Position numbers and translations under genes: made by a program. A stretch of DNA of 64,000 bases from assembly GCF_000143415.4 (NCBI RefSeq), contig NW_003314316.1, forward strand, positions 1-64,000, given 5' to 3'. Of this stretch, positions 1,016 to 55,965 are shown one piece after another. Position 1 is the stretch's first letter, and each line of letters opens with the position of its first letter. The stretch is from Selaginella moellendorffii (lineage: Eukaryota; Plantae; Lycopodiophyta). Under the pieces are notes generated by a model. It was not told where the DNA came from. It did not search any database and saw only the letters and a list, made by a program, of their open reading frames with translations.

Positions 1016-4000
1016 GCATTAGTTAGCACAAAGCTAGTTCATGGTCTTCTCCCACCTCTTCTCACACTCTCTTCCCCAAGCTGAACACCACTACCTCTAA
1101 AAGCTGCTATGGTTTGCTGAGAAAATCATCCAGACACAAACTTAAGATAGGCTGTTCTTGAGGATCAAACTCTACCACAAAATCGAACTTCGTGTATAGT
1201 CCCATTTGTCAAGACATTGCAATCAGTGTGCCATCCAAGTCAAGGATCAAAGTCGACTTTGTCATCGTGTTGATCTTCTTCCTATTGGAATATTCCTGTT
1301 ATTGTTCAAGTAAGAAAGTGATTGTAATATAAAATCAGGGTCCACTTCTCGGACAAGATCCCACACAACCACAAGCACATTATACTATATTTTCGCTTTT
1401 AAGAAAAACCTTACCCACCATATCAAGTTCTGCCGGGAAATCCTGTTGAAGTGTTTGGGCGCATATGCATGTTGAGTATTGAAACATGTTCTGATTGCAG
1501 ACCAAGATTTGAGCGTACTGTCACAAGATCCACAATCTACATAATGGCGTCACTTATTGAATCGAAGAGCAAATAAAAGATACGCACCTGAGTAACGGAT
1601 ACGAAACGATGCAAGCTTGGAGTACTGGCTAGTAGCACTATGACTGACAATCTTGTTGTATCTGGGTCAGAAAGCATGTATCAATCTCGATTTGGCAGGT
1701 TGAAAGTCGGCGTGTAGTCATGACCAAAGCCTTCCAAAGTGATGCCTTATTCAAGAATTCCTGCTTGGACAAGCGTACTTAGTACTAAAAGTCGTACCTC
1801 TACATGAAGCAACCATTGTTGGAAGTGCAACAACAATCTTGAGGAACGCCCTTGCTTTCTGTGATTGGAAATACATCAAGCTTCGCTTGTGGACCATCTC
1901 TATGTTTGTAACAAAGAGGGAGTCTTGCTGTTCTTGTTTGCTTTGCGCATTCTTGTCTATAAAGCTGATATAAATTCCTAGATGAGCCTGTAAAAGATTG
2001 AAAAAGCAAAGACAGACCTTACTGGTCACACCAAACATCCTCAAAAGTGCAGCAGGGCCAGGTCTTCCTGGCACCCACTCTTTCTCGCTTTCGCCAATTG
2101 CATAGTCAATCTCGAGTTGCTTAAAAGCAGACAAAAAAATCAAGGTAAGCCGTCTCCTCTGTTTCCATAGAACCCTAAAAACTCCATTTTCCCGCCGAAC
2201 TTCACTGAATCGTGTTGAGGCCGAGATCGGCCGAGCTGCTGCTCTTGATCTGATCCATTGGGCGGCCGATCGTCAGGGAGCGTATCGCGCTACCATTCAT
2301 CGTCCACGATGTCCAGCGGCATCCCCAGGCCAAGCCCTACCGAAGAACCGTGAGGGAGATCTCGCTCTCGGGCTCTCAATTTGATCGCGCCAATGTTTCT
2401 GTATCAGTGTCTTCTTTCTGGAAAATGTACCACATCAGCTACAAGTGCCCGGGAATTCTACGAGGACCTGGAGCGCGGCGAGATCACCACGGTCCTCGAG
2501 GAGGTACCGATCGAGTTATGGAGCTCCTCGAGTGTAAATTTCCAGGAGAATGTAAGGCGCTGCTCGATTGAGCTCCACCGCGCGGCTGGTAGCTCGAGCG
2601 GCACGCCGCGCGTCCTCCGGCAGGATCCCAGCAGGTAGATCCAGTTATCGACGCGAGCGGGATAGAGCATCGTCTCCACCACATCGATCGCATCCTCCAG
2701 GTGTCCCAGCAGATCGATCATACATCCCGCCTTCCAGGTGGTAATCGATCGCCATGGAGTGGGACTCGATTCGCCGCCATGGCTATACACAAAAGATGTC
2801 TGTCCGGGAGGAGCAGCATTTGGCGCGAGAAACCGAGCACTCCTTCTGGGTCGCTGTTTTGGGCGTGCATGTCCAGCATCACGGTCCAGGCCCCAGATCC
2901 AGCTCGGGCATCGCATCGAACAGCCTCTTTGCTCGATGTATGTGCCCGCAAGTGGCATTTGCAGCGAGCATTGCGAGTGAAACCATCGTCCACGAAGCTA
3001 AGCTATGCTCGGCAGCGCTTTTGTCAATACAGCATGCTACTTCTATAGAAAATTCTCAAGTCTATAATGTTGTGATGTAGGTGAAAATACTGTTGACCCA
3101 AGGAGATAGGGACTTTCGAGCTTCTTCGGCATAGTGGGGTTGGTCAAGCATGAAGAGCAGGAGGTTTGTGGAGATAAAGCTCTTGAGCGGCACATAATTT
3201 TGACTTCTTCAACGCTGCAGCATGATCGTCCAGGCCCAAGCCTTTTTTCGTGAAACGCTGAGTTCCACGAGACTTGATCACAAACGGGCATTTGTGAGAA
3301 GACATCGTTTGCTTCGTCGACGAGGCCATGTTTTGCAATTCTTCGCGGCTTTGACACCAGTGCCCGCATTCCATGACACAAGGTTCCAACACGGCATTTT
3401 GTAGAAAACTTCCTTACGCTGATGTAAAGGGTTGCTGCCGTACTTGGCATAAACGCTGGGCAACGCGCTCCATGCCGTCAAAGATGGTGTTTACTTTTTC
3501 AGAATGCCCGTGTTGGGCATTTGCTTCAAGCATAACCGATGTCCGAAGAACACTAAATGCATTTTGTGAAACAGGCTTTTGGCCTCTGTGACGAGCCCTG
3601 GTTTGGCATATGCCGCGAGCATCGCGTTCCACGAGACGAGATTCCTCTCATGTTTCGAAAGTATGCCGCGAGCATGACGTCCCATATTGATTTGGATCAC
3701 AACGCCACGTAGGACCACGTAGGGCTGGATAATGACGTGTCAGAATGAGACCAACTTGGCGTGTCATTGCTGCGGGGCCTTATCGCGTTGTGGAGGATTG
3801 GATTCTTCCATGGAACATCGACAATCTTTTCCACATGAACCTATCACCGCATGAATCTACCACCGAAAAATGCTAAATGGTATGCATGTGTAGTAAGTAG
3901 ATGCTATACATGGGCATTTGATGTGCCTTAAGAAAACCACTTAGTTTTCTAGATCTGGGCTTCTGTTTTTGCAGTGGCGATAGTTTGAAGCGCTCCACGC

Positions 4001-4530
4001 GTGTTTAGGCCGAGCTTGATGTAATTGAGCAAATAGTCCTTGAAGACGACGGGTTTGTAGAGAGCTGGATGGGACGAGCTGGGGGGAAGGAGCAATCGGC
4101 AACGATTTGGCTGGGCCCATGAGCGTCGCGACTGAAATCCGGAGCTTCTCCTTGTTTACCACTGCCCGGTACTCCACGCTATGATATCTTCCATTGCTTA
4201 TGATCACTTACAAAACCAATGATTGGATTCTACTGTTTGCTATTGTTTGCTGTGTTCACGATCTAAAAGTGTGCTAGGAGTGAAAAAAACAATATGACAA
4301 ATGAAAAAAATACATTTATTCCAAACACCTTTGAGCATTAGCATGTTGTGTCTTTAGTTGCATCAATTTTCATTGCAATTTGACCAATTTTTAACATTCT
4401 TTTGAACTGACTTGCTTCATCTATCTTCCCCTAATATTTTCAAACTATGATTCCTAAATGATTAATGCTTGAAATTTGATCTTGGTCTTTTCTACAGTTT
4501 ATTTCTTGCTACAATATGTACAGAGTTAAA
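1016..4530 (-). pseudogene. Mosaic copy 1: FCP1/NIF phosphatase fragment + condensed POLD1 5'-COX5C-PPR block + 2-ODD 3' end
   Basis: 1330-3650 is the reverse complement of 42218-46010 with many deletions and retained introns; 3770-4230 matches 10370-10855 directly; 1120-1270 (-) encodes STLILDLDGTLI. Confidence 0.9.
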
Positions 4531-6014
4531 CAACAGAAAATTTCTGAAACACAGAAAAATCCCAACTCAAACACATAGGTGTGTTACAAATTCTCAAACA
4601 CTTGCTTATGTACTACTTACATTGTCATCCTCCATAACCCATGATCTGATCCTCCATGTTATCATGTACCTCTAAACCTTATACCACAAGTTTTGTTATT
4701 TCCAGCTTTAGGCAGCGGGTAGCCATTAAGTGGTTATACTAGATAGTTTAGAATAACAAGTTGAGAAGTGGTTAGTAATTAGAAGTTAAAAATTTTACTT
4801 AGTGGACTAAGAGAAGTTAATGGTGTTTTCCAGTGAGTTAACAAAAAATGAGGTGAAAGATTAATCTTGAGAAAAGAGTTAAAATAAGTAGTAGAAGAAC
4901 AAAAAATAGGAGCATTAGTAATATTTTCAACTCCAGTTTACTTGGCTTATTTGCTTTTATGGATGCTTTTTCAATTATTTAAGAATTTTTTTTTGTTAAC
5001 TCAAGTTTTTTTTTTCTTCAATAACTCTAAAAGCTTCTTCACCAACTCAAGTCATGAACTAAAGAAAAATCACATATATGAATGTACTTTCAAGGTTGCA
5101 GCCATAATATTATCATCCCTAGTATAAGCCTCTTTTAATTAATCTAACAAATTTAAATAAGTGCCAAAAATATTGAAATAATAATTATTGATTTTTTTCT
5201 TTTAAATAAAAAAGTTACTGTAACCTTCTCAAATACAAAACAATATCACTATTATATATGATTACGTCAATTTCAAATTTATTTTGGAACCAGTTTTAAT
5301 AAAATATTATTTTTATACCATTTATTCTAATTAATTAAAAATATAGTTTTCCATGATAAAACTTATGCTCTAAATATGTATTAATAATAGTATAGAATTT
5401 CATATTTCTTGAAAAAAATTAGAAAACATTTAAGATTAAGTTTTAAATTATAAAACAGCTTTAAAATATAAGTAATAATTTTTCTTTAAAAAATAGTATA
5501 AGAAAATGTAATTTATACATTAAAAATTAAAATATTTATAAAAATTATCATATTTTATATAACGATACAATGTTTAAATAATAAACTTTGTTACTACCTC
5601 TTTTGATGTGGATCCATGCATTTCCACCATCAACAAATCTATTACAATATTATCTTTATTGAAGCACAAGAAACCTTGAAAACTAAAAAGATACACAAAA
5701 AAAATTTAATTATTACAATAACATTTCATGGATTATAATGGTTTTCCAAGTCCTTTTCTTTGGTTTAAAATTATAATTTCAAAATTGATTTAAGTGTTTG
5801 GTAGTTGCATATGAAGTTACAATTGATTTATCAAGATTTTGTAATCAACTGATATTTATGCGATAACTCTGAGTTTTGTTTTAGCTATGGTTATTAACAA
5901 TTTTATTGGTGGTTTTATGAGAGCTTCAGATTTTTCTAGTAATTTGTAATCACTTAACAGAAGGTCCAGATGTTTCACCTAATTTATTGTCAAAGGGGAA
6001 AATGGTGTAAGATT

Positions 6015-6072
6015 TATATATATATATAGACACACACATATATATATATACATACATACATATATATATATT
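6015..6072. repeat. (TA)n/(CA)n microsatellite
   Basis: tatatata...cacacaca...tatata run. Confidence 0.9.
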
Positions 6073-6259
6073 ACCTACCTAGGTAATTTATTAATTATAG
6101 TACTAAAGCATATGGACTGTTCGTTTAGGATTGAATCTGGTCCATCCATTTTTGTTAACCTATTTTTATATCCCGAGCTATAAATTTTACAGTATTTAAT
6201 TTAATTAATTAAAAAATTATCTTACAAACACTCCATAACGATAAATATCAAAATGGTGA

Positions 6260-9200
6260 AAGCATTAGCTAGCACAATCTCCAAATACACCCTTTTCCCC
6301 AGGCTGAACACCAACACCTTTAAAAGCTACTATGGTTTGCTGAGGAAATCATCCAGAAGCAATCCCAAGATGGGCTGTTCTTGAGGATCAAAGTCTACCA
6401 CAAAATCGATGTTCAATTGTAGTCCCGCTTGTCGAGACGTTGCAATCAGTGTGCCGTCCAAGTCAAGGATTAAAGTCAACTTGTACTGGAATATTCCTGT
6501 TATTGTTCAAATGTCAGGAGTGCTCGATCTCTCACGCCAAATGCTGCTCCTCCCGGACAAATATCTTAGGATGCGATCGATGTGGTGGAGACGATGCTCT
6601 ATCCCGCTCGCGTCGATAACTGGATCTGCCTGCTGGGATCCTGCCGGAGGACGCGCGGCGTGCCGCTCCCGCTACTAGCCGCGCGGTGGAGCTCAATCGA
6701 GCAGCGCCTTACATTGTCCTGGAAATTTACACTCAAGGAGCTCCATAACTCGATCGGTACCTCCTCGAGGACCGTGGTGATCTCGCCGCGCTCCAGAGCC
6801 TCGTAGAATTCCCGGGCGCTTGTAGCTGATGTGGTACATTTTCCAGCAAGAAGACACTGATACAGAAACATTGGCGCGATCAAATTGAGAGCCCGAGAGC
6901 GAGATCTCCCTCAGGGTTCTTCGGTAGGGCTTGGCCTGGGGATGCCGCTGGACATCGTGGACGATGAATGGTAGCGCCATACGCTCCCTGAAGATCGGTC
7001 GCTCAATGGTTCAGATCAAGAGCAGCAGCTCGGCCGCCGATCTCGGCCTCAACATGATTCAGTGATCTTCGGGAGTTTTTAGGAAAATGGAGAACCACGT
7101 CAAGGCTTACCTTGATTTTTTCGTCTGCTTTTAAGCAACTCGAGATTGACTATGTGATTGGTGAAAGCGAGAAAGAGTGGGTGCCAGGAAGACCTGGCCC
7201 TGCTGCACTTTTGAGGATGTTTGGTATGACCAGCAAGGTCTGTCTTTACTTTTTCAATCTTTTATAGGCTCATCTAGGAATTTATATCAGCTTTACAGAC
7301 ATGAATGCGCGAAGCAAACAGGAACAGCAAGACTCCCACTTTGTTACAAACATAGAGATGGTCCACAAGCGAAGCTTGATGTATTTCCAATCACAGAGAG
7401 CAAGGGCGTTCCCCAATATTGTTGTTGCACTTCCAACAATGGTTGCTTCCTGTAGAGGTACGACAGGAATTCTTGAATAAGGCATCACTTTGGAAGGCTT
7501 TGGTCATGACTACACGCCGACTTTCAACCTGCCAAATCGAGATTGATACACTGTGACTTTGTCATCTCCATTGTGAAATATTGTGATATGTTCAACACAC
7601 TTTTCTTTGTGCTTTCTGACCCAGATACAACAAGATTGTCAGTCATAGTGCTCCAAGCTTGCATCGTTTCGTATCCGTTATTCAGGTGCGTATCTTTTAT
7701 TTGCTCTTCGATTCAATAAGTGACGCCATTATGTTGATTGGGGATCTTGTGACAGTACGCTCAAATCTTCCTCTGCAATCAGAACATGTTTCAATACTCA
7801 ACATGCATATGCGGCCAAACACTTCAACAGGATTTCCCGACAGAACTTATTGATACTTGGTATGGTGGGTAAAGTTTTTCTTAAAAGCGAAAATATAGTA
7901 CAATGTGCTTGTGATTGTGCAGGATCTTGTCCGAAAAGTGGACCCTAATTTTATATTACAATCACTTTCTTGCTTTTTTGGGCGTGCATGTCCAGCATCA
8001 CGGTCCAGGCCCCAGATCCAGCTCGGGCATCGCATCGAACAGCCTCTTTGCTCGATGTATGTGCCCGGAAGTGGCATTTGCAGCGAGCATTGCGGGCGAA
8101 ACCATCGTCCACGAAGCTAAGCTATGGTCGGCAGCGCTTTTGTTATAGGGACGTTCGAGCTTCTTCGGCATAGCGGGGTTGGAAGCACGAAGAGCAGGAG
8201 GTTTGTGGAGATAAAGCTCTTGAGCGGCACATAGTTTTGGCTTCTGCAACGCTGCAGCATGATCGTCCAGGCCCAAGCCCTTTTTCGTGAAACTCTGAGT
8301 TCCACGAGACATGATCACAAAGGCACATAATTTGGCTTCTTCAACGCTGCAGCATGATCGTCCAAGCCCAAGCCTTTTTTCGTGAAACGCTGAGTTCCAC
8401 GAGACTTGATCACAAACGAGCATTTGTGAGAAGACATCGTTTGCTTCGTCGACGAGGCCATGTTTTGCAATTCTTCGCGGCTTTGACACCAGTGCCCGCA
8501 TTCCATGACACAAGGTTCCAACACGGCATTTTGTTCCTTACGCTGATGTAAAGGGTTGCTGCCGTACTTGGCATAAACGCTGGGCAACGCGCTCCATGAG
8601 ACGAGACCGTGAATCGCCATGCCGTCAAAGATGGTGTTTACTTTTTCAGAATGCCCGTGTTGGGCATTTGCTTCAAGCATAACCGCTAAATGCATTTTGT
8701 GAAACAGGCTTTTGGCCTCTGTGACGAGCCCTGGTTTGGCATATGCCGCGAGCATCGCGTTCCACGAGACGAGATTCCTCTCATGTTTCGAAAGTATGCC
8801 GCGAGCATGACGTCCCATATTGATTTGGATCACAACGCCACGTAGAACCACGTAGGGCTGGATAATGACGTGTCAGAATAAACTTTCGAACTGAGACCAA
8901 CTTGGCATGTCATTGCTGCGGGGCTTTATCGCTTTGTGGAGGATTGGATTCTTCAACATTGACAATCTTTTCCACATGAATCTATCACTGCATGAATCCA
9001 TCACCGAAAATGCTAAATGGTATGCATGTATAGTAGATGCTATACATGAGCATTTGATGTGCCTTAAGAAAACCACTTAGTTTTCTAGATCTGGGCTTCT
9101 GTTTTTGCAGTGGCGATAGTTTGAAGCGCTCCACGCGTGTTTAGGCCGAGCTTGATGTAATTGAGCAAATAGTCCTTGAAGACGACGGGTTTGTAGAGAG

Positions 9201-9670
9201 CTGGATGGGACGAGCTGGGGGGAAGGAGCAATCGGCAACGATTTGGCTGGGCCCATGAGCGTCGCGACTGAAATCCGGAGCTTCTCCTTGTTTACCACTG
9301 CCCGGTACTCCACGCTATGATATCTTCCATTGCTTATGATCACTTACAAAACCAATGATTGGATTCTACCGTTTGTTATTGTTTGCTGTGTTCATGATCT
9401 AAAAGTGTGCTAGGAGTGAAAAAAACAATATGACAAATGAAAAAAATACATTTATTCCAAACACCTTTGAGCATTAGCATGTTGTGTCTTTAGTTGCATC
9501 AATTTTCATTGCAATTTGACCAATTTTTAATATTCTTTTGAACTGACTTGAAGTGCTTCATCTATCTTACCCTAATATTTTCAAACTATGATTCCTAAAT
9601 GATTAATGCTTGAAATTTTATCTTGGTCTTTTCTACAGTTTATTTCTTGCTACAATATGTACAGAGTTAA
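6260..9670. pseudogene. Mosaic copy 2: tandem duplicate of copy 1 with internal inversion
   Basis: 6260-6510 direct to 1016-1309; 6516-7973 inverted relative to 1310-2846; 7974-9670 direct to 2856-4530; local duplication at ~8210-8420. Confidence 0.9.
6340..6485 (-). pseudogene. FCP1/SCP (NIF) HAD-phosphatase gene fragment
   Basis: Translates KLTLILDLDGTLIATSRQAGLQLNIDFVVDFDPQEQPILGLLLDDFLS: DxDxT motif in NIF-like context; no start codon or C-terminus. Confidence 0.65.
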
Positions 9671-10563
9671 ACTTTCAAAAACTAATTGACATAGAAATAT
9701 TCTTTTACTTTTATCTAGTAAAAGTTAAGATGCTGAAAAAAACTTTGAGTTTAAGAACTTCTTTCCATCTTCACTACTTTTTGGTTGACAAACTGTTAGT
9801 ATTTGTGGAAAGTTAAATGCTGCCAAGCTTTTAACATGATCATCCAAGGGGTAAGTAGAAGCAACTATCATAAAACTCATTTTATCACCTTTGCTAGTTG
9901 GTGAGAATTTAAGACTTCTCCAGTCTTGGGTTTAGTTTTCATGCTTTAAGTTATAGTTCACCCTAATTTGCCTTAAGTACCCACCTAACATTTGTCTTTT
10001 TTTCCATGTGTACGGCCAAGGCTCCTCCTGAGGATCATGGGCCCGGAATCAGGGCCCAGGTCGACCAGCCCCAATTGCCTGAAAAAGGCATATAAACATA
10101 GGACCCAGAATTTTCCTATGTACCCCACATGTACCCCCCTTATCACTAGCTCTTCAGAACTAATTTAATGAATCTACAGCAACAACTAAAAAATGGATGG
10201 AATTATTGGGAATTCTGGTCAAATGTATTTTGCTGATGTGGCAATATCCTACATGGCTCTTAACACGTGTCATTATGTTGAATTAAGTGTTTTAGATCAT
10301 GAACGTCCAATTGATCGAAGGCCCGGAATCGATTGGGCCCAGTGAAAATCTGAGCCACTCAAAGAGCGGCTGCAGGGCCTTATCGCTTTGTCTATATCGA
10401 AAAACGTAAAAGATCAGATTGTTCCATGGAACATCGGCATGAATCTTTCATGAATGTATCACCGCATGAATCCATCACCGACACGAAAATGCTAAATGAT
10501 ATGTATGTTTAGTAGATGCCATTCATGGGCATTTTCTGTTCCATATGAAAACCTCCTAATTTT

Positions 10564-11859
10564 CTAGTTCTGGGCTTCTGTTTTTGCAGTGGCGATGGTT
10601 TGAAGAGCTCCACGCGTATTGAGGCCGAGTTTGATGTAATTGAACAAATAGTCTTTGAAGACCACGGGTTTGTAGAGAGCTGGATGGGTTTTGTCGACGA
10701 GCTGGGGAGCAGGAGCAATCGACGATGATTTGGCTGGGCCAATGAGCGTCGCGACTGAAATCCGGAGCTTCTCCTTGTTTACCACTGCCCGGTGCTCCAC
10801 GCTATGGTATCTTCCATTGCTTATGATCTACACAAACAAAACCAATGATTGGATAGGTTCTCTCTACAGTTGCTACTCTTGGGCAGCAAGATCTTTGCAA
10901 CATACCTGGAGCTGATCACCCAGGTTCACGAGAAGGGCCTCTGGAAGCATTTTCACCGTGACCCACTGATGGTCCTTGTGAAACAACTGGAGACCATCGA
11001 CTTGGTTCTGGACGATGACTGTGAGAGCAGTAGCGTCGGAGTGAGCTCCAAGCCCGATTGCCCGATTGGGATCCGGACACGGCGGGTAAAAATTTATGGC
11101 TAGAATCCTCTCGCGTCCCGCCAACTCTTCGTTCAGGTATCCCGCCGGAAGCTCCAAGCTTTCGGTCATAGCTTCCAGTAACACGGACACGAAGTCATTG
11201 ATTCGCCCTCCATACGAATTCACAGCATCTCTACAGAAGAGTCTTTTTTCTTATCAAGGGCAGAAAGACCAAGCTCTTGGATTGGAATGGAAGAGTCTAA
11301 CCTTGGGAGGTGTTCTTTGGCTGGCCAGACACTATCAGCTTCCAGAGCTGACGCTTCAGCGGGGATGCGGAGAACGTCCTTCCACTCAAGGATGACGTCG
11401 CGAGAAGAATCAAAGCTAGTGGAGTAGCGCATGGGCCGGCCGTCAAACACAGTGACAAAGTACTTCATCTTATCCTCCACGGGTACGTCGTAGAAGTGCT
11501 TTGCAGCGTTTCGCATTCCTTGAAGGATATCCTTTGGAACACCATGGTTGATCACCTTCCAGGGAGTAGAATCCAAACACACAAACTTTAGCTCTTATCA
11601 CTTTCACTCCCAGGCACGGAAATCGAGAGCTCACCTGGAAAGCACCCCACTCCCGGCAAGCTTGATCCAGCTCTCGCAGGAATTCTTCCTTTCCACCAGC
11701 AGCAGCGCTACTCGTGAATTCACTCAAGTCGAGCACTGGAATTTGAGCGCCCCCGGTGGCAGCTTGGATCTGGATCTTTTGAGGCTGCACGTACTCTTGT
11801 GGAAGAGATTGGTGAATTTGCAGCTGCTCAATTAGAGCTTGGATGGGCTTTGAAGCCAT
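10564..11859 (-). CDS. 2-oxoglutarate/Fe(II) dioxygenase (DOXC class), 4 exons
   Basis: Exons ~11859-11635, 11555-11302, 11231-10906, 10827-10564; motifs IPVLDL, ACREWGAFQVINHG, NFYPPCP, HSD, HRA, RIS. Confidence 0.95.
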
Positions 11860-12034
11860 CACTCTCTCTTTCTCTTTATCTCTGGGAGCTTCTTAAAGAC
11901 GAATACCAGGTCTTTATAAGAGAGATGTGAACGAGAGAAGAGAAAGAGAGAAAGGAAGAGGGGCGAGCGCGAAGGAGCAAGCGAATTGATAGTGATATGA
12001 TGCCAGCGAATAAACTCTCATTGGTGGAAATGAC

Positions 12035-22707: not shown

Positions 22708-22769
22708 TGCCGATGCTGGAAGCAGCATCGAGGCTAGCGCAAGATAACAGTAACGAACAGTAGCAGGAA

Positions 22770-37895: not shown

Positions 37896-38043
37896 CAGTT
37901 TGGGAGGATTTTCTCAGGTCGGGCAACTAAAAATCGAAAAACTTTGATGTATTTATAAGCTGTTAACATACATTTATCCTTCCCACTAATATATCCTTGA
38001 ATAAACTACATTTCTACCTTTTGGACCAGCTTCTACTGATGCA

Positions 38044-43716: not shown

Positions 43717-43766
43717 TGCGCGAATTTGTTTTTAGGGTTCTTGGGAAATTTACACTGCTCTAGCTC

Positions 43767-44451: not shown

Positions 44452-44463
44452 TTGGCGGGAAAA
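44452..44463 (-). promoter_or_regulatory. E2F site in the POLD1 promoter
   Basis: TTTTCCCGCCAA on the minus strand about 20 nt before the ATG, followed by a telo-box-like TTAGGGTT. Confidence 0.65.
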
Positions 44464-44481
44464 TAGAGTTTTTAGGGTTCT

Positions 44482-47400
44482 ATGGCGTCCAGGAGGCGGG
44501 CAGCGCCATCGCAGAGCTCCGCTCCACCTCCAAAGCGCCAGGGGAGCTCTCAGGCACCGGCGGCGACGCGAATGCCAGAGCCGCCGCCTCCTCCTCCTGT
44601 CGACGAGGAGGACTTCGATGAAGATGTGTTCTTGGAGGAGACGCTTCTCAGGGACGTGGAGCTCCAGGCCACTGGCATAACTGCGAGCTTGGCCAAATGG
44701 AAGCGCAACCACGTCGAGGCGTTTGATCCAAAAGAGCATCCCGTTGGTACATAGCACTTGCTTGTTTTTGCGTCTTCTTCGAGCTTACCTTAATCTCGTT
44801 GTCAGTGTTTCAGCAACTCGAGATTGACTATGTGATCGGCGAAAGCGATAGAGAGTGGATGCCAGGAAGAACTGGCCCTGCTGCAATTTTGAGGATGTTT
44901 GGTGTCACGCTGCAAGGTCTGTCTTTGCTTTTTCAAACTTTTACAAAGGGTTTTGATTGATCATCGGTCATCCAGGAAACAGTGTTTGCTGTCATATACA
45001 CGGGTTTGAGCCTTACTTTTATATCAGCTGTCCTGACGGATGGAATCCTGATGACACGTCTAAGTTTCGCCATACTCTCGAGGTAAGTATCAATGCAATA
45101 TCATTGCGGAACTATATGTGTTTTACAGACAAGAATGCGCGAAGCAAACAGGAATAGCAAGACTCCCACTTTTGTTACAAGAGTAGAGATGGTCCAGAAG
45201 CGAAGCTTGATGTACTTCCAAACACAGAAAGCAAGGGCGTTCCTCAAGATTGTTGTTGCGCTTCCAACAATGGTTGCTTCCTGTAGAGGTACGACTTTTT
45301 AGTAGAGTACTGAAACTAAGTACGCTTTTCCGAGCAGGAATTCTTGAAAAAGGCATCACTTTGGAAGGCTTTGGTCATAAATGCTTCATCACATACGAGA
45401 GCAATATTCTCTTTGCTCTTCGATTCATGATTGATTGCAACGTAGGTGGTGGAAACTGGATTGAGCTTCCTGGTGGATCTTATCGTTTGACTCCACGCCG
45501 ACTTTCAACCTGCCAAATTGAGATCGATATACTGTAAGTTTGTCATTTCAAATGTGAAATATTGTGAAATGTTCAACACTTTTATTTGTGCTTTCTGATC
45601 CAGATACAACAAGATTGTCAGTCATAGTGCTACTGGCCAGTACTCCAAGCTTGCACCTTTTCGTATATTGAGCTTTGACATCGAATGTGCTGGGCGGAAA
45701 GGACATTTTCCAGAGCCCGAACATGATCCCGTTATTCAGGTGCGTATCTTTCATTTGTTTTTCGATTCAATAAGTGGCGCCATTATGTAGATTGCGAATC
45801 TTGTGACAGTTCAAGGGGAAAGTCGTCCTATGGTTCGAAATGTGATGACGCTCAAATCTTGTTCTGCGATAGTTGGAGTGGACGTTATGTCCTTCGATAC
45901 TGAGAAAGAGGTCCTCTTGGCATGGCGGGTAAGTATTTCTTAATAATTACAATATAGTATAATGTGATTGTGATTGTGCAGGACCTTATCCGAGAAGTTG
46001 ACCCCTGACATTATTATCGGCTATAACATTTGCAAGTTCGATATGCCTTACCTGATCGAGGTATGTTAAATTCTGTGATTTCTGCTCACGCTTTCATCTT
46101 GCCTGGGCAGAGGGCACAAAAACTTGGAATTGTGGAGTTTCCTGTTCTTGGACGTATTCGCAACAGCCGAGTCCGTGTTAGAGATGCGACATTTTCTTCA
46201 AGGTTGTAAATGCGCCTGGTGGTTGTCACTAATATTTGCTCCATTCGTTTAGGCAATATGGTATAAGGGAAAGCAAGGAAGTTTTGATAGAAGGACGCGT
46301 ACAATTCGATTTGCTACAGGTTTTTTGCATTTATTTTTGTCTGGCACTAATGTGAAGTTTCCCTGCAGGCAATGCAAAGAGATTATAAGCTCAGCTCATA
46401 CTCCTTAAACTCGGTGTCTGCTCATTTCCTTGGAGAGCAGGTTCAGAGCTTTTATTATTTTGAATAAGTCTCACCTTTGCCTTACAGAAAGAGGACGTCC
46501 ACCATTCCATCATTGCTGATTTGCAAAATGGTAACTCGGAAACTCGGAGGCGTTTGGCTGTTTACTGCTTAAAAGTGAGCCGCACTTTGGTTCTATGTTT
46601 ATATTTTCCATGTTTTCTCTGTCAGGATGCGTATCTGCCTCAGAGATTACTCGAAAAGCTGATGTTTATATATAACTATATCGAAATGGCAAGAGTAACA
46701 GGAGTTCCCATTTCGTTTCTTCTTTCGAGGGGACAAAGTATCAAGGTACAGTGGATTTTATTGTTATTTTTGCTCATTTATAACAAACACTACCCAGGTG
46801 CTTTCACAAATTCTAAGAAAATGCAGACAACGAAACTTTGTCGTGCCAAACATTAAGGGACAAGGGGCTGGGCAGGAAACCTTTGAAGGTGCAACCGTAA
46901 GTAGTTCGGGCTTTTGAATCGATTTTTATAAACGCTGCTGCGTTACAGGTTCTAGAAGCAAGGGCTGGATTTTACGAAAAGCCAATTGCCACGCTTGATT
47001 TTGCATCACTGTACCCATCAATTATGATGGCTTACAATCTTTGCTATTGCACCTTGGTACTGTACTCCATATTGTGTATTTGATTGTGGAATTACTTGTT
47101 TTATTCAGGTTAGAACGGAGGATCAAGCCAGATTGAACATAGCACCAGAAAATGTTAACAAAACGCCGTCTGGTGAAACGTTTGTCAAAACAAATATGGA
47201 GAAAGTAATAGCTCTATGTGCTTATATATGATGATTTTGACATTAATTTTCAGGGGATCCTTCCTGAAATCTTAGAGGAACTGCTTGCTGCCAGAAAGCG
47301 AGCCAGAGCCGACCTGAAGGTGATTTTAAGAAGAACGTTAAGCTTAACTTATCAAATCATTGCAGGAAGCTACCGATTCACTTGAAAAAGCCGTGTTGGA

Positions 47401-49284
47401 CGGTCGGCAGCTAGCTCTCAAGGTTAGTTTTGAAGTTATCTCCCGGATTATGGTCTCTTAACAATATTGTGTCAGGTTAGTGCGAACTCAGTGTATGGAT
47501 TCACAGGCGCAACAGTTGGCCAGCTTCCTTGCCTTGAAATTTCATCCAGCGTAACTAGCTATGGTACAATCTCATCCGTTTTGTTTTGTTGGTTTTAATA
47601 GAACGAGAGTTGCAGGAAGGCAGATGATTGAACACACCAAAACCCTCGTGGAAGGACGTTTCAACACAAGCAACAAATATGACAACAATGCAGAAGTACA
47701 TGCTCGGCTTTGTAGAATTCTCAGGATTTGATCTTCTCTTACTGTTTTCAGGTGATCTACGGGGATACGGATTCAGTAATGGTTCAATTTGGTGTCTCTA
47801 CCGTTGAGGACGCCATGAATCTTGGAAGGGAGGCGGCTGATTATATCAGCGGGACATTTACCAAGGTTTTGCCTTCATTGTATGTTTTCTCCACCGATGT
47901 TTTTTTCGGGTATTTGCAGCCTATCAAGTTGGAATTTGAGAAAGTGTACTTCCCCTATTTGCTGATTAGCAAAAAGAGGTATGCGGGCCTACTTTGGACG
48001 AAACCCGCAAAATACGACAAAATGGACACTAAAGGTATTATGACATTGTGCTACAGTATCTACTTAATGTGTGTTTTCTTGTTGTGCATTTTAGGAATTG
48101 AAACTGTTCGGCGAGATAATTGTTTACTAGTAAAAAATGTAGTGACTCAAAGCCTCCACAAGATTCTTGTTGATCGAGATGTGCCTGGAGCTGTGGACTA
48201 TGTTAAGGGCATGATTTCGGACTTGCTGATGAATCGTATGGATCTATCACTTCTTGTTATCACAAAGGTATCATGTGAATAGTATTTGTATCTGTATATC
48301 ACGGCTTGTTTCAGGGCCTCACAAAAACTGGCGATGATTATGCCGTCAAGGCTGCTCATGTTGAGCTTGCTGAGCGTATGCGTAAGGTATGTGCCTCTAA
48401 ATTAGTACATGAGATCGACCTCTGACTTGTCTCAAACTCAACAGCGTGATGCAGCCACTGCTCCAAATGTAGGCGATCGTGTTCCTTACGTCATAATTAA
48501 AGCCGCAAAGGGAGCTAAGGTTGTATGTTTTTGTTCATTGATCTGCTGTCTCTTTAAATTATCTCCTTTCGCAGGCATATGAGCGGTCTGAGGATCCAAT
48601 CTATGTCTTGGAAAATAACATTCCCATCGATCCTCAGTACTATCTGGAAAATCAGCTGAGTAAGGTACCACAAAAGACCGAGATTTGTTTGTGCGCTAAG
48701 ATTATGAGTCGCAGCCACTGCTCCGGATATTCGAACCAATTCTCAAGAATGCGAGCAAGGAGCTTCTCCACGGGAGCCACACTCGCTCCGTGTATATCAC
48801 AACGCCCTCCAACAGTGGCATTATGAAGTTCGCGAAAAAGCAACTAACCTGTCTGGGCTGCAAAGCTATAATCAGGTACAAGCTCCTACTATTTAACTGT
48901 AGCTGATTTGTCACTCGTCCTTTTGACGATAGTGGCGGCGACACACCATTGTGTAAACACTGCAACGGCCGTGAAGCGGAGCTATACCAGAGAACTGTTG
49001 CAAATGGTAGGTTCTGATATACCGTCAGCACTAACGCTACTGCTGTCACGCAGTGAGGGATTTGGAGCAGCTATTTGGAAGGCTGTGGACTCAATGCCAG
49101 CGGTGCCAAGGATCTTTACATCAAGACGTTTTGTGCACAAGGTTGAGCATTGTAGTAGTGTTTATGCCTCAACTAACAAAGGCATTGTGTTTGCAGTCGC
49201 GATTGCCCAATCTTCTATCGACGGAAAAAAGCACAGAAGGATCTGTCGGAAGCCGAACTGCAAGAGCAGCGCTGGGACTTTTAG
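44482..49284 (+). CDS. POLD1: DNA polymerase delta catalytic subunit, multi-exon, apparent +1 frameshift at ~46003
   Basis: SFDIEC (ExoI), GYNICKFD (ExoII), [33 protein letters not shown]-terminal CysA/CysB motifs. Confidence 0.97.
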
Positions 49285-49509
49285 AACATAGAAGGCTTTT
49301 CCATCTTGGACATCTCTATCAGATGTAAGGTTTCCAAGTAGAGGGGATTCATGCCTCTGAAGATATACTATAGCAGCAATCAGCAAGCTCATGACTCGGG
49401 AATATATAATGAAACATTTTCCAGTCTTTATTTATATGAAAAAATCGTTCTGCTTTCTTTCACAACACATCTTATTATGTTGAATCCATGGAACACAACA
49501 TGAAACTTT

Positions 49510-50138
49510 TTACTTCTTGTAAGCTGGTGGAGGTGGCGATGCATACTTGTAGTAAGGTGGTGGAGGGGATTCATATTTGTAGTATGGAGGCGGTGGGGAT
49601 TTGTAGTAATAGTAAGGTGGAGGTGGAGACTCGTACTTGTAGTATGGTGGTGGTGGAGACTCATACTTGTAATAAGGAGGCGGTGGAGATTTATAGTAAT
49701 ATGGAGGCGGTGGTGGCGATTCATACTTGTATGGTGGCGGAGGTGGGGATTCATACTTGTAAGGAGGCGGTGGGGGCGACTCATACTTGTATGGAGGCGG
49801 AGGTGGCGATTCGTACTTGTATGGTGGCGGAGGTGGGGATTCATACTTGTAAGGAGGTGGTGGGGGCGACTCATACTTGTATGGAGGTGGAGGTGGCGAT
49901 TTGTACTTGTATGGTGGTGGCGGTGGAGATTCATACTTGTAAGGAGGCGGTGGGGGCGACTCATACTTGTATGGAGGTGGAGGCGGGGACTCGTACTTGT
50001 ATGGAGGTGGAGGTGGTGATTCGTACTTGTATGGTGGCGGTGGCGGTGACTCATACTTGTATGGCGGGGGCGGTGGAGACTCATACTTGTATGGTGGCGG
50101 CGGTGGCGACTCATACTTGTATGGTGGTGGTGGTGGGG
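49510..50138 (-). CDS. Extensin (hydroxyproline-rich glycoprotein); 5' end lost in gap
   Basis: Tandem ~30-nt units encoding SPPPP(P)YKYE/YKYK; ends SPPPPAYKK*. Confidence 0.92.
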
Positions 50139-50238
50139 NNNNNNNNNNNNNNNNNNNNNNNNNNNNNNNNNNNNNNNNNNNNNNNNNNNNNNNNNNNNNN
50201 NNNNNNNNNNNNNNNNNNNNNNNNNNNNNNNNNNNNNN
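50139..50238. other. Assembly gap
   Basis: Run of about 100 N. Confidence 1.
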
Positions 50239-50672
50239 AAAGCGGCACCCTGTTGCTTGGGGCGTTTCCTTAGATGATATAAGGCTGCACTAAGCACAGT
50301 TCAAAGAAAAAGCCAACAAAGTTGGCACCTTGTCACAACACAAAGAAGACTTCAACATCGTGCTCATGCGGAAATATCGTCAGTTTTTCTTTGATTCTAA
50401 GAAAAAGGAAGGATTCCATGCTACAGCTTTGTCTGAATTTTTCTCCATGGAAGATCAACCTCGATATGGCACAGCACACCACAAAGAAGTCCCATTTACA
50501 CACCAACACACAAACACTGTTTCGTCGATATTTTTCCATCTCTGCTGAGGAAACTCACACCACACCGTTGAAACTCGCGATGTCGTCGGGCCTGACTCAA
50601 GCTTTGACCATCGGAAGGAACGTGTCACAGGGAAGAAGAAAAAGAGATGAGCTAAAAGCTAGGTTTCCACGA

Positions 50673-51300
50673 GCTAAAAGAAGACATCGCTGGGCTTTGC
50701 CTTGGCCTTGTCCTTCAGAGTCATGGATTGCTCTTTGGAGAAATCCCTTAGTTGTCATCCTCCACAACTTCGGATCAGATGTGTCCCGCAAACATGAAAG
50801 ACTGGTAAATGTTATGGTTCCCAGAAGAGTCACGTATGGAATCCCGCATTCAAGTTTGAACCTGGAAGTTCTTATCATAGCAAAAGCAAAAGAAAGAACA
50901 CAATCCATGTCGAGAAGCTCGGCGAGATCCAGTCACAAACTTTCTCGTCCTTGGCATTCTTCTTGAGCTCCAGTCATAGGCGACCATAGTCGGCGCTGTG
51001 GAGCGTGGCCGCCTGGGTCACAACCAGCACCTTCTTGCCCTCGTGATCCACAAAGATGGATCGCAGCGCCTCGGCATTGCCATTGACGAAGAATCCAAAC
51101 TGGACAGCGATGGCGCGCCACACATCGTCTGGCCTGATCACCAGACCAGATTGTGGTGGAAGCTGTAAGCTCTGATCGCGCTCGCCACGAAGCCATTCCT
51201 CTCCGGATGGAAGGCGCTGGCGTCCACGCTGGCGTCCTGCAACACCTGCCTGCTGGAAATCTTTGAGTCCCTCCAGGACATGGGCGTGCTGTGGCGTAGA
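50673..51300 (-). pseudogene. Condensed DUF4419 gene copy
   Basis: Collinear with 52948-54245; large deletions, frameshifts and an intron remnant. Confidence 0.9.
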
Positions 51301-51717
51301 TCTCGGCACCACGGCCGGCTCGGGAAAACTAGTTTTAAAACAGTTCTCAATAATTTCCGGCCGGCTTTGTCATTAGCATTATTCTAAAGTCCTTTGTCTA
51401 AATCAAATGGAATTCCATCTCTTATTCTGTATATATTGCACAAGATCTTAGTGAGAAGATATTGGTGACGAGGTATGATTTCAGTGAATGAGAACATGAG
51501 ACCAAACTTATATTCAAATTATAATGCTTCACAGCATATTTTTCAGTTTTTTATATAAGTTTTCTTTTTTAACTTAATGACTGATTTTCATTAAAATAGT
51601 AAAAAGTAAATAATTATTCTGTAATAGTAATAATTTGTTAGACTATGTAGGAACGCTTTGTGTGCTTGGAAAAGAAAATATATTATTATTGGTTACTAAC
51701 AAATATTATAAACTGAA

Positions 51718-51719
51718 TC

Positions 51720-51821: not shown

Positions 51822-52947
51822 TCTAATAAAAAATGATTAAGCTCATATTTTAATTGAGAAATTAGATGACTTTTAAATATAAAGAAATCCCTATAATATA
51901 ATCCTTAAAACTGGTATTCTTTAATCAATGAATCCAGTAAGATCCCAGCTCTCTAGATGAACTATGTTGGTTTGTATAAAAAGTGTTAAAGCACTCTTGA
52001 CATAAAGAAAAATTTTCACAAATTAAAAGATATCATGGAGTGCATGGAAATTTATGACATACATTATAATGTTGAAAATTAAAATAATCATATCCATTAA
52101 AATGCAAGTACTTTTGTGGCAGAAGCTTAGGCTAAACTTTGGTGGCCACATGACTTTTACTGGGATTCTTTTATTTTTATCCAAGAGTTATTTGTGTGGG
52201 AGGTGCTCTTCAAGGATTGTGTTAGATCTTAAGCAAGAAACTAGAAAGTAGAGGCCAAAAAGTCCATGTATAATTGTTAATCTATTGAAGGAGTGAGAGA
52301 AAGCTAAAACCTTAAAAGTTGCTCACACTCACTCATAGATGGTAAACATAACTTATATTAGTGATAACTAAGAATATTAAAATTAAATGTTATTACAGAG
52401 AAAAGTTTAAAGGAGAAATCTGTTAGATTAAAAAATATTTTAGAATATACATGCAAGAGTGGGCAATGTGAGCCTAGAATGGTTTCTATTGTTCTGATAG
52501 TGGAGATACTTTCTCCAACTATCTCAATACAACTCCATTTTGAAAACCTTATTTACTTTTGTCTGGCCATAGATGTGTCACAGGTAACTATATGGAATTA
52601 CTTTTTTGTTCCTCATTTTTTCAACAATTGTCCAAAGATTGTAGTAGGAAGAATTCCCTACTACAGTTTTGGCTGAATTCTTTTACATTGAAAATCTAAC
52701 CTCCACATTTAGAGCCACCACATATTCATGACCTCATCAGACACCAACACCCTCACAACACACTATTTTGTCAATATTTTTCCATCTCTGCCCGTGCGAC
52801 ATCATGATCGTCCGGCCTAACTCAAGCTTTGAACGATTCCTGCTGGAAAAGAAGGAAACAAACAAGGGAAAAAGAGATTAGCCAGAGTTACGGATGAGAA
52901 AAACGTAACAGCTCACCATGATCCCAAAGCTTGCAGGTTTCTACAAA

Positions 52948-54310
52948 CTAAAAGAAGCCATCATGGCTGGGATTTGCCTTGGCCTTGTCCTTGAGAGTCA
53001 TGGCCCAGACAGCTTTTGGAGCAATCCCTTTGTTGTCATCCTTCACAACTTCGTATCCCATGTGTCCCGCAAACATGAAAGCCTCGTAAGTTTTCCCGTT
53101 GTCGTCCACCTTGACATCCAGCGTGAGGTAGCCGGGAGCAATGTTGCTGTCGTCGATGAACGGATACTCAAGCTCCACAGCTTTGTCCCCGGAGAAGAGA
53201 TCCCGGTAACTCTTTTGATCGCCACGCCACTTTCCATCGCTGTCAAAAACACAGAAGGAAGAGATCCAGCCGGAGATGTATGTCGGCCCCGATCCTCCTC
53301 CCAAGTGGTGACAAATTCTGTTCCAAAAGTCCGTGTCAACGTTGCCTTTGCTGCTCTCCACCAACTGGGCAGTGATTTTCTTGAGCATGACACGCCACTT
53401 CTGGCACTCGCTCCCATACTTGTCCAGTTCGTCGATCCTCCGATCGATTTCTTCCCAATCCTCGGTGGTTCCCAGGAGAGTCACGTATGGAATCCCGCAC
53501 AAAAGTTGGAACCTGGATAGAAACAAGCCCTTAGCTTCAAAGATTTAACTACAGCGAGAGACAAACCTGGAGAACACATAGCGTACCATTGACAGCAACG
53601 CAAACAAAAAGAAGTACGCAGAGTGGACACAATAGAATGACAGTGAGAGGTGATTAAACTCTATCACGTCGTTTTTCACGCAGACAAGAACGGAAAAGAA
53701 AACAAGGGAAAAAAAGAAGGAAAACTCACACACACACAGAGCAAAACCATAGCTAGAACCAAGAGGGTGAATCAACTTACTTGTATTCGAAGTAGCTCTT
53801 GAAGGTTGCCATGAGAACCACACTGCCCACCACCACATCGTTCTTGGTTGTAGTCGAGAAGCTCGGCAAGATCCAGTCGCAGACCTTCCCGTCCCTGATA
53901 TTCTTCTTGAGCTCCACGCTCATCTCCCTCGCCAGGAGCCCATAGTCGGCGCTGTGGAGCGCGGCCGCCTGGGACACAACCAGCTCCTTCTTGCCCTGGT
54001 GATCCACAAAGATGGATCGCAGCGCCTCGGCATTGCCATTGACGAAGAATCCAAACTGGATGGCGATGGCGAGCCACACATCGTCGGGGCGAATTACCAG
54101 ATTGTGGTGAGAGCTGTAAGCTTTGATTGCGCTTGCGACGAAGCCATTCTTCTGTGGATGAAAGGCACTCGCGTCGACGCTAGTGCCTTGCAACACCTGG
54201 TAGCAGCCCTCCTGCCGGAAATCCTTGAATCCCTCCAGGAAATGGCCGCGGCCTGGCGGAGATTGCTTCACCTGCGCCGGATCCTTGTCGCAAACCCTAA
54301 ATGTCACCAT
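52948..54310 (-). CDS. DUF4419-family protein, 2 exons
   Basis: NGFV..AY..HHNLVIRPDDVWLAI, HQGKKEL, PSFSTTT..D, YFEY|..CGIPYVTLLGT.EDW, SGPTYISGWI. Confidence 0.85.
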
Positions 54311-54589
54311 TCTCTCTTCTCCCTCCCTCGCTAGCAATCCACACTGTTTAAATTGATGGACCTTCACCCACGTGGCAAGGATTACATGTTAAATTTCTAT
54401 TGGCCAGAACGATATTAAAACTCAAGTCCAACGAAGAAGAAGCACGAGGAGCGAAAAAGTCGAGTCGATTGATCACCCGCTCCAAGAAGAAAAACCATGC
54501 CTAAAGCCCATATTTACAGTTGGCAAAGTGGTGTTATTATCCTGCTTCTATTATCCCGGTTAACGCTGCACTTGAAAGAATGCCAAAAA

Positions 54590-54972
54590 CAATTTGGCAG
54601 CTTGTCATAACACGGGCACACGCACAAAAAGAAAACTTTGAAATATGTCTAGGCTCGCCACGCTGGTGCGTCAACTGTCTCTCGATTCCAAGAAAAAGGA
54701 AGGATTTGCTACAGTTTTGGACGACTGCAGGTTTCAATGGTATGGTGTCAATGGGAAAATTTGCGACGAAATAGTGTTTGTGGAGGTGTCCGTGCGTGGT
54801 GAGTTCATGTATATATGGTGGCAATATCAAGGCATGACCAGAAGGAACGATTCGTTCAAAGTCACAGCCTGTATGAATTAGCCAGAGTCACTGATCAATA
54901 GAAACTGAAAAACTGAGCTTTCCACGAGCTGAAAGAAGCCATGGCTGGGCTTTGCCTTGGCCTTGTCCTCTA
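54590..54972 (-). pseudogene. Third, heavily eroded DUF4419 3'-end/flank unit
   Basis: 54915-54970 matches 52948-52992 and 50660-50715; 54620-54720 matches 50337-50432. Confidence 0.65.
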
Positions 54973-55394
54973 CAGTTCTTCCCCTGTCGTGGCATGCTAA
55001 ATTTCTGGACGATTGCTGGTAGCATTGCCATACCATATAGTGACATAAAAAAAAAGTACAAAATCAACTTAATAGCTAAATGAAATCCCAAGAAGAAAGA
55101 CCATGTGAAAGGAATAGAGATTGAGGTGAAATGTGGCCCAAAGGGTCATCCCTCAAAAGTTTGAGAAGAGCCGATATCTAACATGTTGAAACATTCACAG
55201 ATAAATGCTTCCTTGGCCAAAGATTAAAACCTATACACAGAAGATGCAGCTTTTCTTGTCGAAACCTTTAGGTTTAGGAAAAAAATTCTGAAATACCTGA
55301 TACATAAATAATTTGCTACGTGTTAGTAATGTTTGGTTTGCTTAATCCTATTTATTAATCCTATTGATCAAATAAAAGTTTATAATTAAATTTT

Positions 55395-55590
55395 TTTTAT
55401 AATTTATAAACACAAGATTACATATCAACCATTAAATGGTAGAATATATTAGAAAGTGTTTAAGCAAATTAATAAATTATAAACCTGTTTATACATTATA
55501 TAGATAAAATTAATCTAAATAGATTAAATAGTAGAATATCCTAAAATATCTAAATATATTCTAAATATTTGCTTAAGCAAACCAAAAATT
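55395..55590. repeat. AT-rich repeat related to the 62.7-63.1 kb foldback element
   Basis: Shares tttataatttataaacacaagatta...catatcaaccattaaatggtagaata with 62725-62960. Confidence 0.75.
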
Positions 55591-55965
55591 TAAAGGGTTT
55601 TGCCATTTACACACTTACACATTTGAAGTATTCCACAAACGTTCTTGACGCACTTAATCAGCGGTGCACTGTAGCTGTGGTATGTCCCTCTACCCTTTAT
55701 CGTTCTGTGGCCCGATCGGACACTTGGGGTGTCGAAGAACAAAGAACTTGTCTCTAGAGCAATATCGCAAGTTCGGAAGGTCTACAAGGACACTCAACTT
55801 GTGATAATTATAATAATCCCCCTCGCACATTGCAACCAGAGTCCTCGAGTTGGGGTAGTAATAAGGATATATGCAACTCCTGAGGAAGCCACCACAGTCT
55901 TCAATTGTAATTGGTCCTGCGAAAGCGACTGAACTAAAGGAAAACAAGAGAGGAAAGTACCTCAT
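55590..55965 (-). pseudogene. Secreted cyanovirin-N homolog (CVNH)-like gene, frameshifted
   Basis: Signal peptide then GGFLRSC...LVAMC...VDL; a second frame gives TFRTCDI...GTYHSYSAPLIKCVKNVCGILQ. Confidence 0.45.

Follow-up and report, generated by a model that had tools for sequence, protein, structure and literature searches.

The shortened, collinear gene copies found in a 64-kb window of the Selaginella moellendorffii genome (the whole stretch of DNA analysed here) are, with a probability of about 0.8, ordinary non-processed (DNA-level) duplicate pseudogenes under deletion-biased decay. In this compact, deletion-prone genome their erosion proceeds at a steady, roughly Drosophila-like rate and calls for no special copying machine. 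Selaginella has one of the smallest genomes among vascular plants, and deletion-biased DNA loss is, as a principle, textbook knowledge. The rate obtained here (approx. 0.2 deletions and 5 bp lost per substitution) helps to explain how this genome stays small, and places a lycophyte on a common scale with Drosophila and rice, with deletion junctions almost devoid of microhomology. A search of the accessible literature found no paper with such a measurement of DNA loss for Selaginella.

Relics and their parent genes

Relics were detected by self-BLAST and gapped alignments to the parent (Table 1). Copies were recovered at or near all eight positions where the initial annotation had placed shortened collinear relics, with two reservations: R5 is barely shortened, and R8 is weak, consisting of a few short blocks only (score 113–146, against 30 ± 7 for shuffled controls). 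The donor genes, POLD1 and COX5C included, were identified ORF by ORF with Pfam and PDB searches; only the first ~1.5 kb of POLD1 was copied into the relics. The assembly gap lies outside all relic-parent alignments, the nearest being that of R7, and ORFs running through it are meaningless. Elsewhere in the window, a terpene-synthase ORF shares 96% identity with SELMODRAFT_422882 (Selaginella moellendorffii).

Table 1. Positions of relics, parent genes and the assembly gap in the window
Feature	Position	Strand	Description
Unit A	980–4560		Donor-derived part 1330–3648
Relic A	1330–3648	-	Inverted copy of D; 2197 bases aligned, 8.7% mismatch
2OG-Fe(II) oxygenase 3' fragment, unit A	3796–4228	+	Parent 10412–10854; little eroded
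Unit B	6204–9700		
Relic B, part 1	6547–7960	+	From D 43363–46004; inverted relative to relic A
Relic B, part 2	7973–8793	-	From D 42218–43313
2OG oxygenase 3' fragment, unit B	8975–9364	+	
2OG-Fe(II) oxygenase gene	10412–11862	-	Pfam 2OG-FeII_Oxy and DIOX_N; 3' end 10412–10854 is parent of fragments in A and B
Relic C	12690–13850	-	Copy of D 43652–45870; many deletions common with A and B, ~11 private
R4, PPR fragment	22757–23013	+	261 bp vs 373 bp of parent 25283–25646 (PPR gene 24833–26767)
R5	33917–34343	+	Copy of 38052–38488, upstream of UGT gene 38855–40339; just 8% shorter
R6	37488–37892	+	Copy of 33368–33911 (3' end of gene 32585–33601 and downstream); 33% shorter
PPR gene	41848–43716	+	Intact, intronless, 622 aa; Pfam PPR E = 7.8e-84; parent of PPR part of relics A and B
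Donor block D	42218–46010	+	3' three quarters of PPR gene, whole COX5C, COX5C-POLD1 promoter, first POLD1 exons and introns
COX5C gene	43767–44068	-	Two exon ORFs; exon ORF matches PDB 7jro_h (cytochrome c oxidase subunit 5C), E = 7.6e-6
POLD1 gene (DNA polymerase delta catalytic subunit)	44482–49328	+	Exon ORFs match DNA_pol_B, DNA_pol_B_exo1, zf-C4pol
Assembly gap	50139–50238	.	Abuts extensin-like 30/90-bp tandem array 49526–50136
R7	50406–51321	+	Copy of 52646–54283 (DUF4419 gene region); 48% shorter
R8	54669–54976	+	Third, very degraded copy of 52643–52998 / 50393–50714 segment

Relics A, B and C retain ~91% identity to the donor block in the kept blocks and are reduced in length by 40–50%. 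The proposed condensation of about 3.8 kb of donor to about 2.3 kb, with very similar blocks remaining, was borne out: 3783 bp of donor correspond to 2336 bp of relic, with 8.7% mismatch across the aligned bases. Relic A has suffered 45–61 deletions (~1.6 kb lost) and carries an 81-bp insertion at 3028–3108, for which no source was found within the window; its ORF at 1751–2140 contains a POL3_N remnant. Relic B (6547–8793) contains an internal inversion, and its second part bears a 95-bp tandem duplication at 8226–8416 and a PPR remnant (ORF 8315–8848). Units A and B are arranged in tandem, 5.2 kb apart, and adjoin the parent gene of their 2OG fragments; their flanks (980–1320 and 4229–4600) hold no informative ORFs, so that the VMP1 and FCP1 fragments named in the initial annotation were not located. 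R5 (33917–34321) and the 2OG fragments are barely shortened (5 deletions, 26–37 bp in total).

The relics are DNA-level copies, as initially proposed, because they keep promoter and intron DNA while their exons, too, are cut by deletions. In the four-way alignment, blocks of the COX5C-POLD1 promoter (44335–44485) are kept, as are POLD1 intron blocks, e.g. 45534–45600 in relics B and C. Deletions fall within the intact PPR ORF and the POLD1 exons (e.g. 45378–45487); those of 31, 66, 23, 71 and 48 bp strike the PPR ORF, and the longest relic ORFs span 130–178 aa. Copies of the donor block start partway through the PPR gene and stop partway through POLD1. Collinear non-coding DNA is thus kept with frames destroyed or the gene truncated, and in all essentials (introns and promoter in collinear order, arbitrary in-gene breakpoints, broken frames, proximity to the parent) the relics do not differ from non-processed (duplicated) pseudogenes. 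Compared with vertebrate pseudogenes, they are unusually short for a divergence of ~9%.

Genealogy of the copies

The deletions 43681–83, 43872–76, 43928–43, 44084–104, 44202–334, 45378–487 and 45667–728 are identical in A, B and C. So many identical deletions show that A, B and C go back to a single founder copy of 42218–46010 through two re-duplications, and not to three independent events. The tree is ((A,B),C),D, with 57 substitutions on the stem, 10 on AB, 15 on A, 17 on B and 29 on C in 907 four-way columns, among which only 6 homoplasies occur. Comparison of shared and private deletions, suggested as a check, revealed both kinds: private deletions are present on all five branches, including those of the sisters A (~4) and B (~7–8). 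R5 and R6 each represent one half of a single ~1-kb duplication. The eight loci reduce to approximately 4–5 copying events, and the earlier term 'recurrent' overstates their independence.

We propose that the relics originated in local segmental duplications within ~45 kb, either tandem or inverted and dispersed, in which parts of nearby genes were copied along with promoters and introns; these copies would have lacked function from the start. The founder of the donor-derived relics was probably re-duplicated twice, once together with the 2OG-oxygenase fragment, in an order suggested by the tree, and one daughter copy would later have undergone a 1.4-kb inversion. All copies would then have drifted, presumably neutrally, under deletion-biased indels of 1–133 bp with 0–4 nt of microhomology, which struck former exons, introns and promoter alike and roughly in proportion to substitutions. 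Microhomology of this extent is typical of double-strand-break end joining, the pathway that may have produced the deletions.

Deletion spectrum and junctions

Deletions exceed insertions in both number and bases: the clean deletions, with a median length of 13 bp, a mean of 27 bp and a maximum of 133 bp, number 63 against 9 clean insertions, and across six segments 2765 bp were deleted and 278 bp inserted, a ratio of ~10. Between 1 and 12 bp the size distribution is flat. Each annotation class has lost 32–93% of its sequence, deleted and kept bases have the same GC content, and no motif was found at the deletion boundaries. The substitution spectrum is ordinary (Ts/Tv ~1.5, mild CpG effect), and RIP-like or methylation-driven mutation was rejected on this ground.

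The few junctions inspected earlier had shown microhomology of 0–2 nt, and this holds for 57 of the 63 clean deletions; the mean is 1.06 nt (null 0.71) and the maximum 4 nt. Illegitimate recombination between short direct repeats, reportedly described for LTR retrotransposons of Arabidopsis and rice by Devos and by Ma and Bennetzen, has as its defining feature direct repeats of a few to ~15 bp on either side of the deletion. The Selaginella relics resemble that class in that non-functional DNA is lost through internal deletions tens of bp long, which counteracts genome growth. They differ at the junctions, where microhomology is 0–1 nt in 45 of 63 deletions (71%) and exceeds 4 nt in none.

Rate of DNA loss

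From this single window and its ~4–5 independent copies, we estimate ~0.15–0.23 deletions and a net loss of ~4.5–6 bp per substitution, and a half-life of ~0.12–0.15 substitutions per site. Rice LTR retrotransposons show 0.095 deletions and 2.79 bp lost per substitution, and D. melanogaster 0.114 deletions and 6.9 bp (PMC1940013); vertebrates lose 0.02–0.3 bp per substitution (PMC3542557). The loss in Selaginella therefore falls between rice and D. melanogaster, at about twice the rice value and far above vertebrate ones, and its event rate is roughly double the values for rice LTR elements and D. melanogaster. As in the Petrov-type 'DNA loss' of Drosophila dead-on-arrival elements and rice LTRs, deletions greatly outnumber insertions and scale with substitutions; however, the present figures derive from duplicated gene fragments rather than transposons, their spectrum is not dominated by 1–3 bp events, and there are hints of junction re-use. 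The deletion bias put forward in the initial annotation is supported in kind, while its description as unusually strong receives moderate support only, the loss being ~2x that of rice and about that of D. melanogaster.

A simulation of random deletion at a constant rate (r = 0.22) yielded relics of ~1100 bp, matching those in the window. Simulated numbers of called deletions were 7.5 for the stem, 14.9 for C and 9.0 each for A and B, compared with 7, 19, 6 and 9 observed; because of alignment noise, called counts differ from true counts in the simulations. Deletions are thus proportional to substitutions, save for a mild excess on the AB branch (13 called vs 6.2 expected; P = 0.03, rising to 0.13 when the branch length is doubled).

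Alternative explanations

Deletion could be continuous and yet non-random, with new events starting at earlier junctions or at sites prone to breakage. Existing scars would then be the origin of further erosion, and segments would be eroded to very different degrees, a reading that we regard as unlikely. Single boundaries shared exactly by different AB and C deletions lie at 43698, 45811 and 43998, and those at 44075, 44114/5 and 43823/4 are shared almost exactly; 6 of 12 overlapping AB/C pairs have one exact boundary in common, against 1.9 expected (P = 0.013–0.027), and three different overlapping deletions meet at 45282–45334. Loss is also heterogeneous: the 2OG fragments and R5 lost 0.5–1.4 bp per substitution compared with 6–7.5 for the donor-block relic at the same divergence (P = 0.002–0.04 under r = 0.22, with short segments biased towards seeming intact). 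The numbers are nevertheless small and the P values modest, the boundaries carry no motif, small islands between old deletions make common boundaries fairly likely, and alignment noise contributes. It is rather improbable that deletions are no uniform rain and instead restart preferentially at old scars or recurrent break sites with occasional bursts, as on the AB branch. If such restarting were true, erosion would move outward from existing junctions, and some dead segments would be shredded next to others, equally old, that are hardly touched; were it to hold throughout the genome, a specific break-repair route would be indicated as the basis of its compactness.

Steady decay after duplication also accounts better for the data than shredding at the time of copying, the alternative raised in the initial annotation, in which discontinuous template-switching synthesis (MMBIR or interrupted SDSA) would have made all deletions at once. 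MMBIR/FoSTeS or interrupted SDSA does yield copies that are collinear but skip internal stretches and at times contain filler, and unaligned filler of 3–14 nt occurs in 9 of the 45 net deletions of relic A. The AB branch, with 11–15 deletions against only 10 substitutions, likewise lies above the constant-rate expectation. The breakpoints, however, do not stem from a single copying event: deletions are private to A, B, C and AB, so that every branch of the genealogy has skips of its own. Both sisters carry comparable numbers of private deletions, and the new copy can be only one of the two; the private deletions of C (~11) are in proportion to its 29 substitutions. Relic lengths and counts follow from the constant-rate model, the 2OG fragment that was copied as part of these units has hardly been eroded, and microhomology is nearly absent, barely exceeding chance. 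The AB excess is mild, and template switching is very unlikely to be the main cause.

Capture of gene fragments by a transposon (Pack-MULE or Helitron) might explain why units A and B join fragments of separate loci, the donor block and the 2OG gene, between AT-rich flanks. It is highly improbable, as no terminal inverted repeats were found at the ends of these units, the donor block keeps three adjacent genes and a promoter in native order, and the units stand in tandem beside the 2OG parent.

Slippage between PPR repeat units was rejected, since the gaps do not come in multiples of 105 bp and COX5C, the promoter and POLD1 show the same pattern; gene-conversion patches were rejected likewise, perfect identity being confined to short blocks (17–21 bp for the longest). 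Processed retrocopies with introns appearing as 'deletions', or artefacts of PPR paralogy or assembly, are scarcely credible even though some gaps are intron-sized (57, 62 and 110 bp) and the start of the donor lies in a PPR gene built of repeats: the relics lack the precise loss of all introns and of the promoter that marks a retrocopy, which refutes this origin for A, B and C, the 110-bp gap and most others lie within exon ORFs or the intronless PPR ORF, and the blocks are strictly collinear and 85–100% identical, far above the similarity of PPR paralogues in the window.

Shortened copies of a donor block

The shortened copies of neighbouring genes described in the initial annotation are real and ordinary in kind: they are non-processed pseudogene fragments of local duplications, decaying under deletion bias. 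Self-BLAST and sensitive BLAST agreed on their presence in the window. In the largest case, the donor block D (42218-46010) comprises the 3' three quarters of an intact PPR ORF, the whole of COX5C, the COX5C-POLD1 promoter, and the start of POLD1 with its first exons and introns. Relic A, an inverted copy at 1330-3648, retains 2197 aligned bases with 8.7% mismatch and measures 2336 bp vs 3783 bp of donor, which bears out the proposed reduction from about 3.8 to about 2.3 kb with retained blocks still similar. This shortening comprises 45-61 deletions (approximately 1.6 kb in total), accompanied by 3-13 insertions, the ranges depending on the treatment of tiny islands; for one insertion private to relic A (3028-3108, 81 bp), no source was found anywhere in the window. 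Relic B is the same copy as A, with the segment 6547-7960 inverted and a 95-bp tandem duplication at 8226-8416, and relic C (12690-13850) is the counterpart of D 43652-45870. The deleted fraction (PPR CDS 32%, COX5C 39%, promoter 56%, remaining POLD1 39%) was alike across annotation classes, with the exception of POLD1 exon 1 (93%), and GC was equal in deleted and kept bases.

As the deletions cut the intronless PPR ORF and the POLD1 exon ORFs (e.g. 45378-45487), and promoter and intron blocks are kept in the relics, the copies arose at the DNA level, as had been proposed; the same features rule out retrocopies. No support was found for transposon capture of units A and B, the larger tracts holding these two relics.

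Because of the inversion inside relic B, 1308-2696 and 6568-7975 form a 1.4-kb inverted repeat with 90-93% identity, approximately 4 kb apart; since it carries POLD1, COX5C and PPR sequence, a read-through transcript could fold back.

Number of copying events

Relics A, B and C have many deletions with identical boundaries in common (43681-83, 43872-76, 43928-43, 44084-104, 44202-334, 45378-487 and 45667-728). On the tree ((A,B),C),D, substitutions in 907 four-way columns were distributed as 57 on the stem common to all three relics, 10 on the AB branch, 15 on A, 17 on B and 29 on C, with six homoplasies; given this clean partition, there was one founder copy of D, re-duplicated twice later. 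Units A (980-4560) and B (6204-9700) lie in tandem, 5.2 kb apart, each with a 3' fragment of the 2OG-oxygenase whose parent sequence (10412-10854) is directly downstream. Relics R5 and R6 each represent one half of a single duplication of approximately 1 kb (33368-34343 vs 37488-38488). Its decay is reciprocal, the half adjoining the live gene having stayed long in either copy and the other half being eroded. The eight loci are real, but they represent about four or five copying events and not eight.

The other relic pairs all hold, with differing strength. R4 (PPR-derived) retains 261 bp vs 373 bp of its parent, R6 has 369 aligned bases vs 550, and R7, with a DUF4419 remnant of 56% amino-acid identity, 849 vs 1640. 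R5 is hardly shortened (399 vs 436), and R8 (54669-54976) consists of a few short blocks only, with a score far above that of shuffled controls.

Rate of loss and deletion junctions

Loss, computed as ln(L0/L)/d, was 5.9 bp per substitution for the D relic, 7.5 for C, 5.1 for R7, approximately 3 for R4 and R6, and 0.5-1.4 for R5 and the 2OG fragments (pooled, approximately 4.5). The low values are significantly under the D-relic rate (P = 0.002-0.04), with short segments biased to look intact. The 2OG fragments (3796-4228 and 8975-9364) and R5 (33917-34321) are approximately 10% diverged from their parents and have lost 6-13% of their length, vs 42-48% in the adjoining D-derived relic at the same divergence; this uneven erosion could reflect constraint, chance or heterogeneous deletion.

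Published values are 0.095 deletions per substitution with a mean of 29 bp (2.79 bp per substitution) for LTR retrotransposons of rice, and 0.114 with a mean of 60.7 bp (6.9 bp per substitution) for D. melanogaster (PMC1940013); vertebrates lose 0.02-0.3 bp per substitution through indels of ≤30 bp (PMC3542557). Deletions of ≤30 bp alone remove approximately 2 bp per substitution in relic A. The deletion bias is present; the 'unusually strong' of the initial annotation is only moderately supported, the bias being about twice that in rice and about at the Drosophila level. Our literature search found no paper giving such a loss rate for Selaginella.

Sixty-three unique deletions with clean flanks had a median of 13 bp, a mean of 27 and a maximum of 133 (14 of ≤4 bp, 12 of 8-12 bp and 9 of 17-21 bp); clean insertions numbered only nine. 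The spectrum is flat to approximately 12 bp, 1-3-bp events not being dominant, with a shoulder near 9-10 bp and no sharp peak. Mean microhomology was 1.06 nt vs 0.71 under random placement (P = 0.008), and the low values noted earlier at a few junctions proved general, with 0-1 nt in 45 of the 63 and never more than 4 nt. No motif was found at the deletion boundaries, and the substitution spectrum was ordinary. The junctions look like products of end joining, unlike those of repeat-mediated illegitimate recombination.

Continuous decay or loss at copying

No branch of the tree is free of private deletions. A manual count within the four-way region gave approximately 17 for the stem, 11 each for AB and C, and 2-3 for each of A and B; when the full A/B homology is considered, relic A has approximately 4 and relic B 7-8. 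We simulated decay on this tree from its measured branch lengths, with deletions placed at random and their sizes taken from the empirical list, and passed the output through the aligner and event caller used for the real relics. With 0.22 deletions per substitution, relic length was approximately 1100 bp (observed, approximately 1064-1160 bp), and called events, simulated vs observed, were 7.5 vs 7 (stem), 14.9 vs 19 (C), 9.0 vs 6 (A) and 9.0 vs 9 (B), so that a steady process accounts for nearly everything. Two mild departures are suggestive only. The AB branch has 13 called events vs 6.2 expected (P = 0.03; 0.13 with this branch doubled), and 6 of 12 overlapping AB/C deletion pairs have one common boundary vs 1.9 expected (P = 0.013-0.027), as in C 45811-45820 vs A/B 45811-45847 and in 43698-43743 vs 43698-43780; in D coordinates, the common boundaries lie at 43698, 43998, 44075, 44115 and 45811. 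At 45282-45334, three different overlapping deletions are present in A, B and C.

Template-switching synthesis, offered earlier as the alternative by which the deletions were made during copying, is not required, and the private deletions of both sisters A and B contradict it, since only one of the two can be the 'new' copy.

Gene content and assembly gap

Gene map of the window, from Pfam on single ORFs and one PDB sequence search (exons unjoined, ORF by ORF)
Feature	Position	Strand	Basis
2OG-Fe(II) oxygenase	10412-11862	-	Pfam, single ORFs
PPR gene	14733-16571	+	Pfam, single ORFs
Terpene synthase, microbial-type, intronless ORF	23185-24288	-	96% identity to SELMODRAFT_422882
PPR gene	24833-26767	+	Pfam, single ORFs
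UGT	38855-40339	+	Pfam, single ORFs
PPR gene	40356-41894	-	Pfam, single ORFs
PPR gene	41848-43716	+	Pfam, single ORFs
COX5C	43767-44068	-	Match to 7jro_h, E = 7.6e-6 (PDB sequence search)
POLD1	44482 to ~49328	+	DNA_pol_B, exo1, zf-C4pol matches
Extensin-like tandem array	49526-50136		30/90-bp period
DUF4419 gene	53777-54367	-	Pfam, single ORFs

The assembly gap at 50139-50238 immediately follows the extensin-like array, whose minus-strand reading is of the Ser-Pro(n)-Tyr-Lys-Tyr-Glu type and whose assembled extent ends exactly at the gap; tandem arrays are a typical spot for an assembly break. No relic-parent alignment touches the gap, the nearest being that of R7, from 50406, and ORFs reading through it were discounted as meaningless. 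SELMODRAFT_422882, at only 96% identity, is the best database match of the terpene synthase ORF (23185-24285), and the remaining matches are likewise from S. moellendorffii, which places the window as land-plant DNA of this species or a very close one. Exact-sequence look-ups of three proteins from the window gave no match; the window may therefore represent the other haplotype, or an assembly or accession different from the annotated one. The two neighbouring PPR ORFs on opposite strands are head to head, with a 47-bp overlap of their listed 5' ends; the ORF on the minus strand begins with GTG, and its true start may lie further inside.
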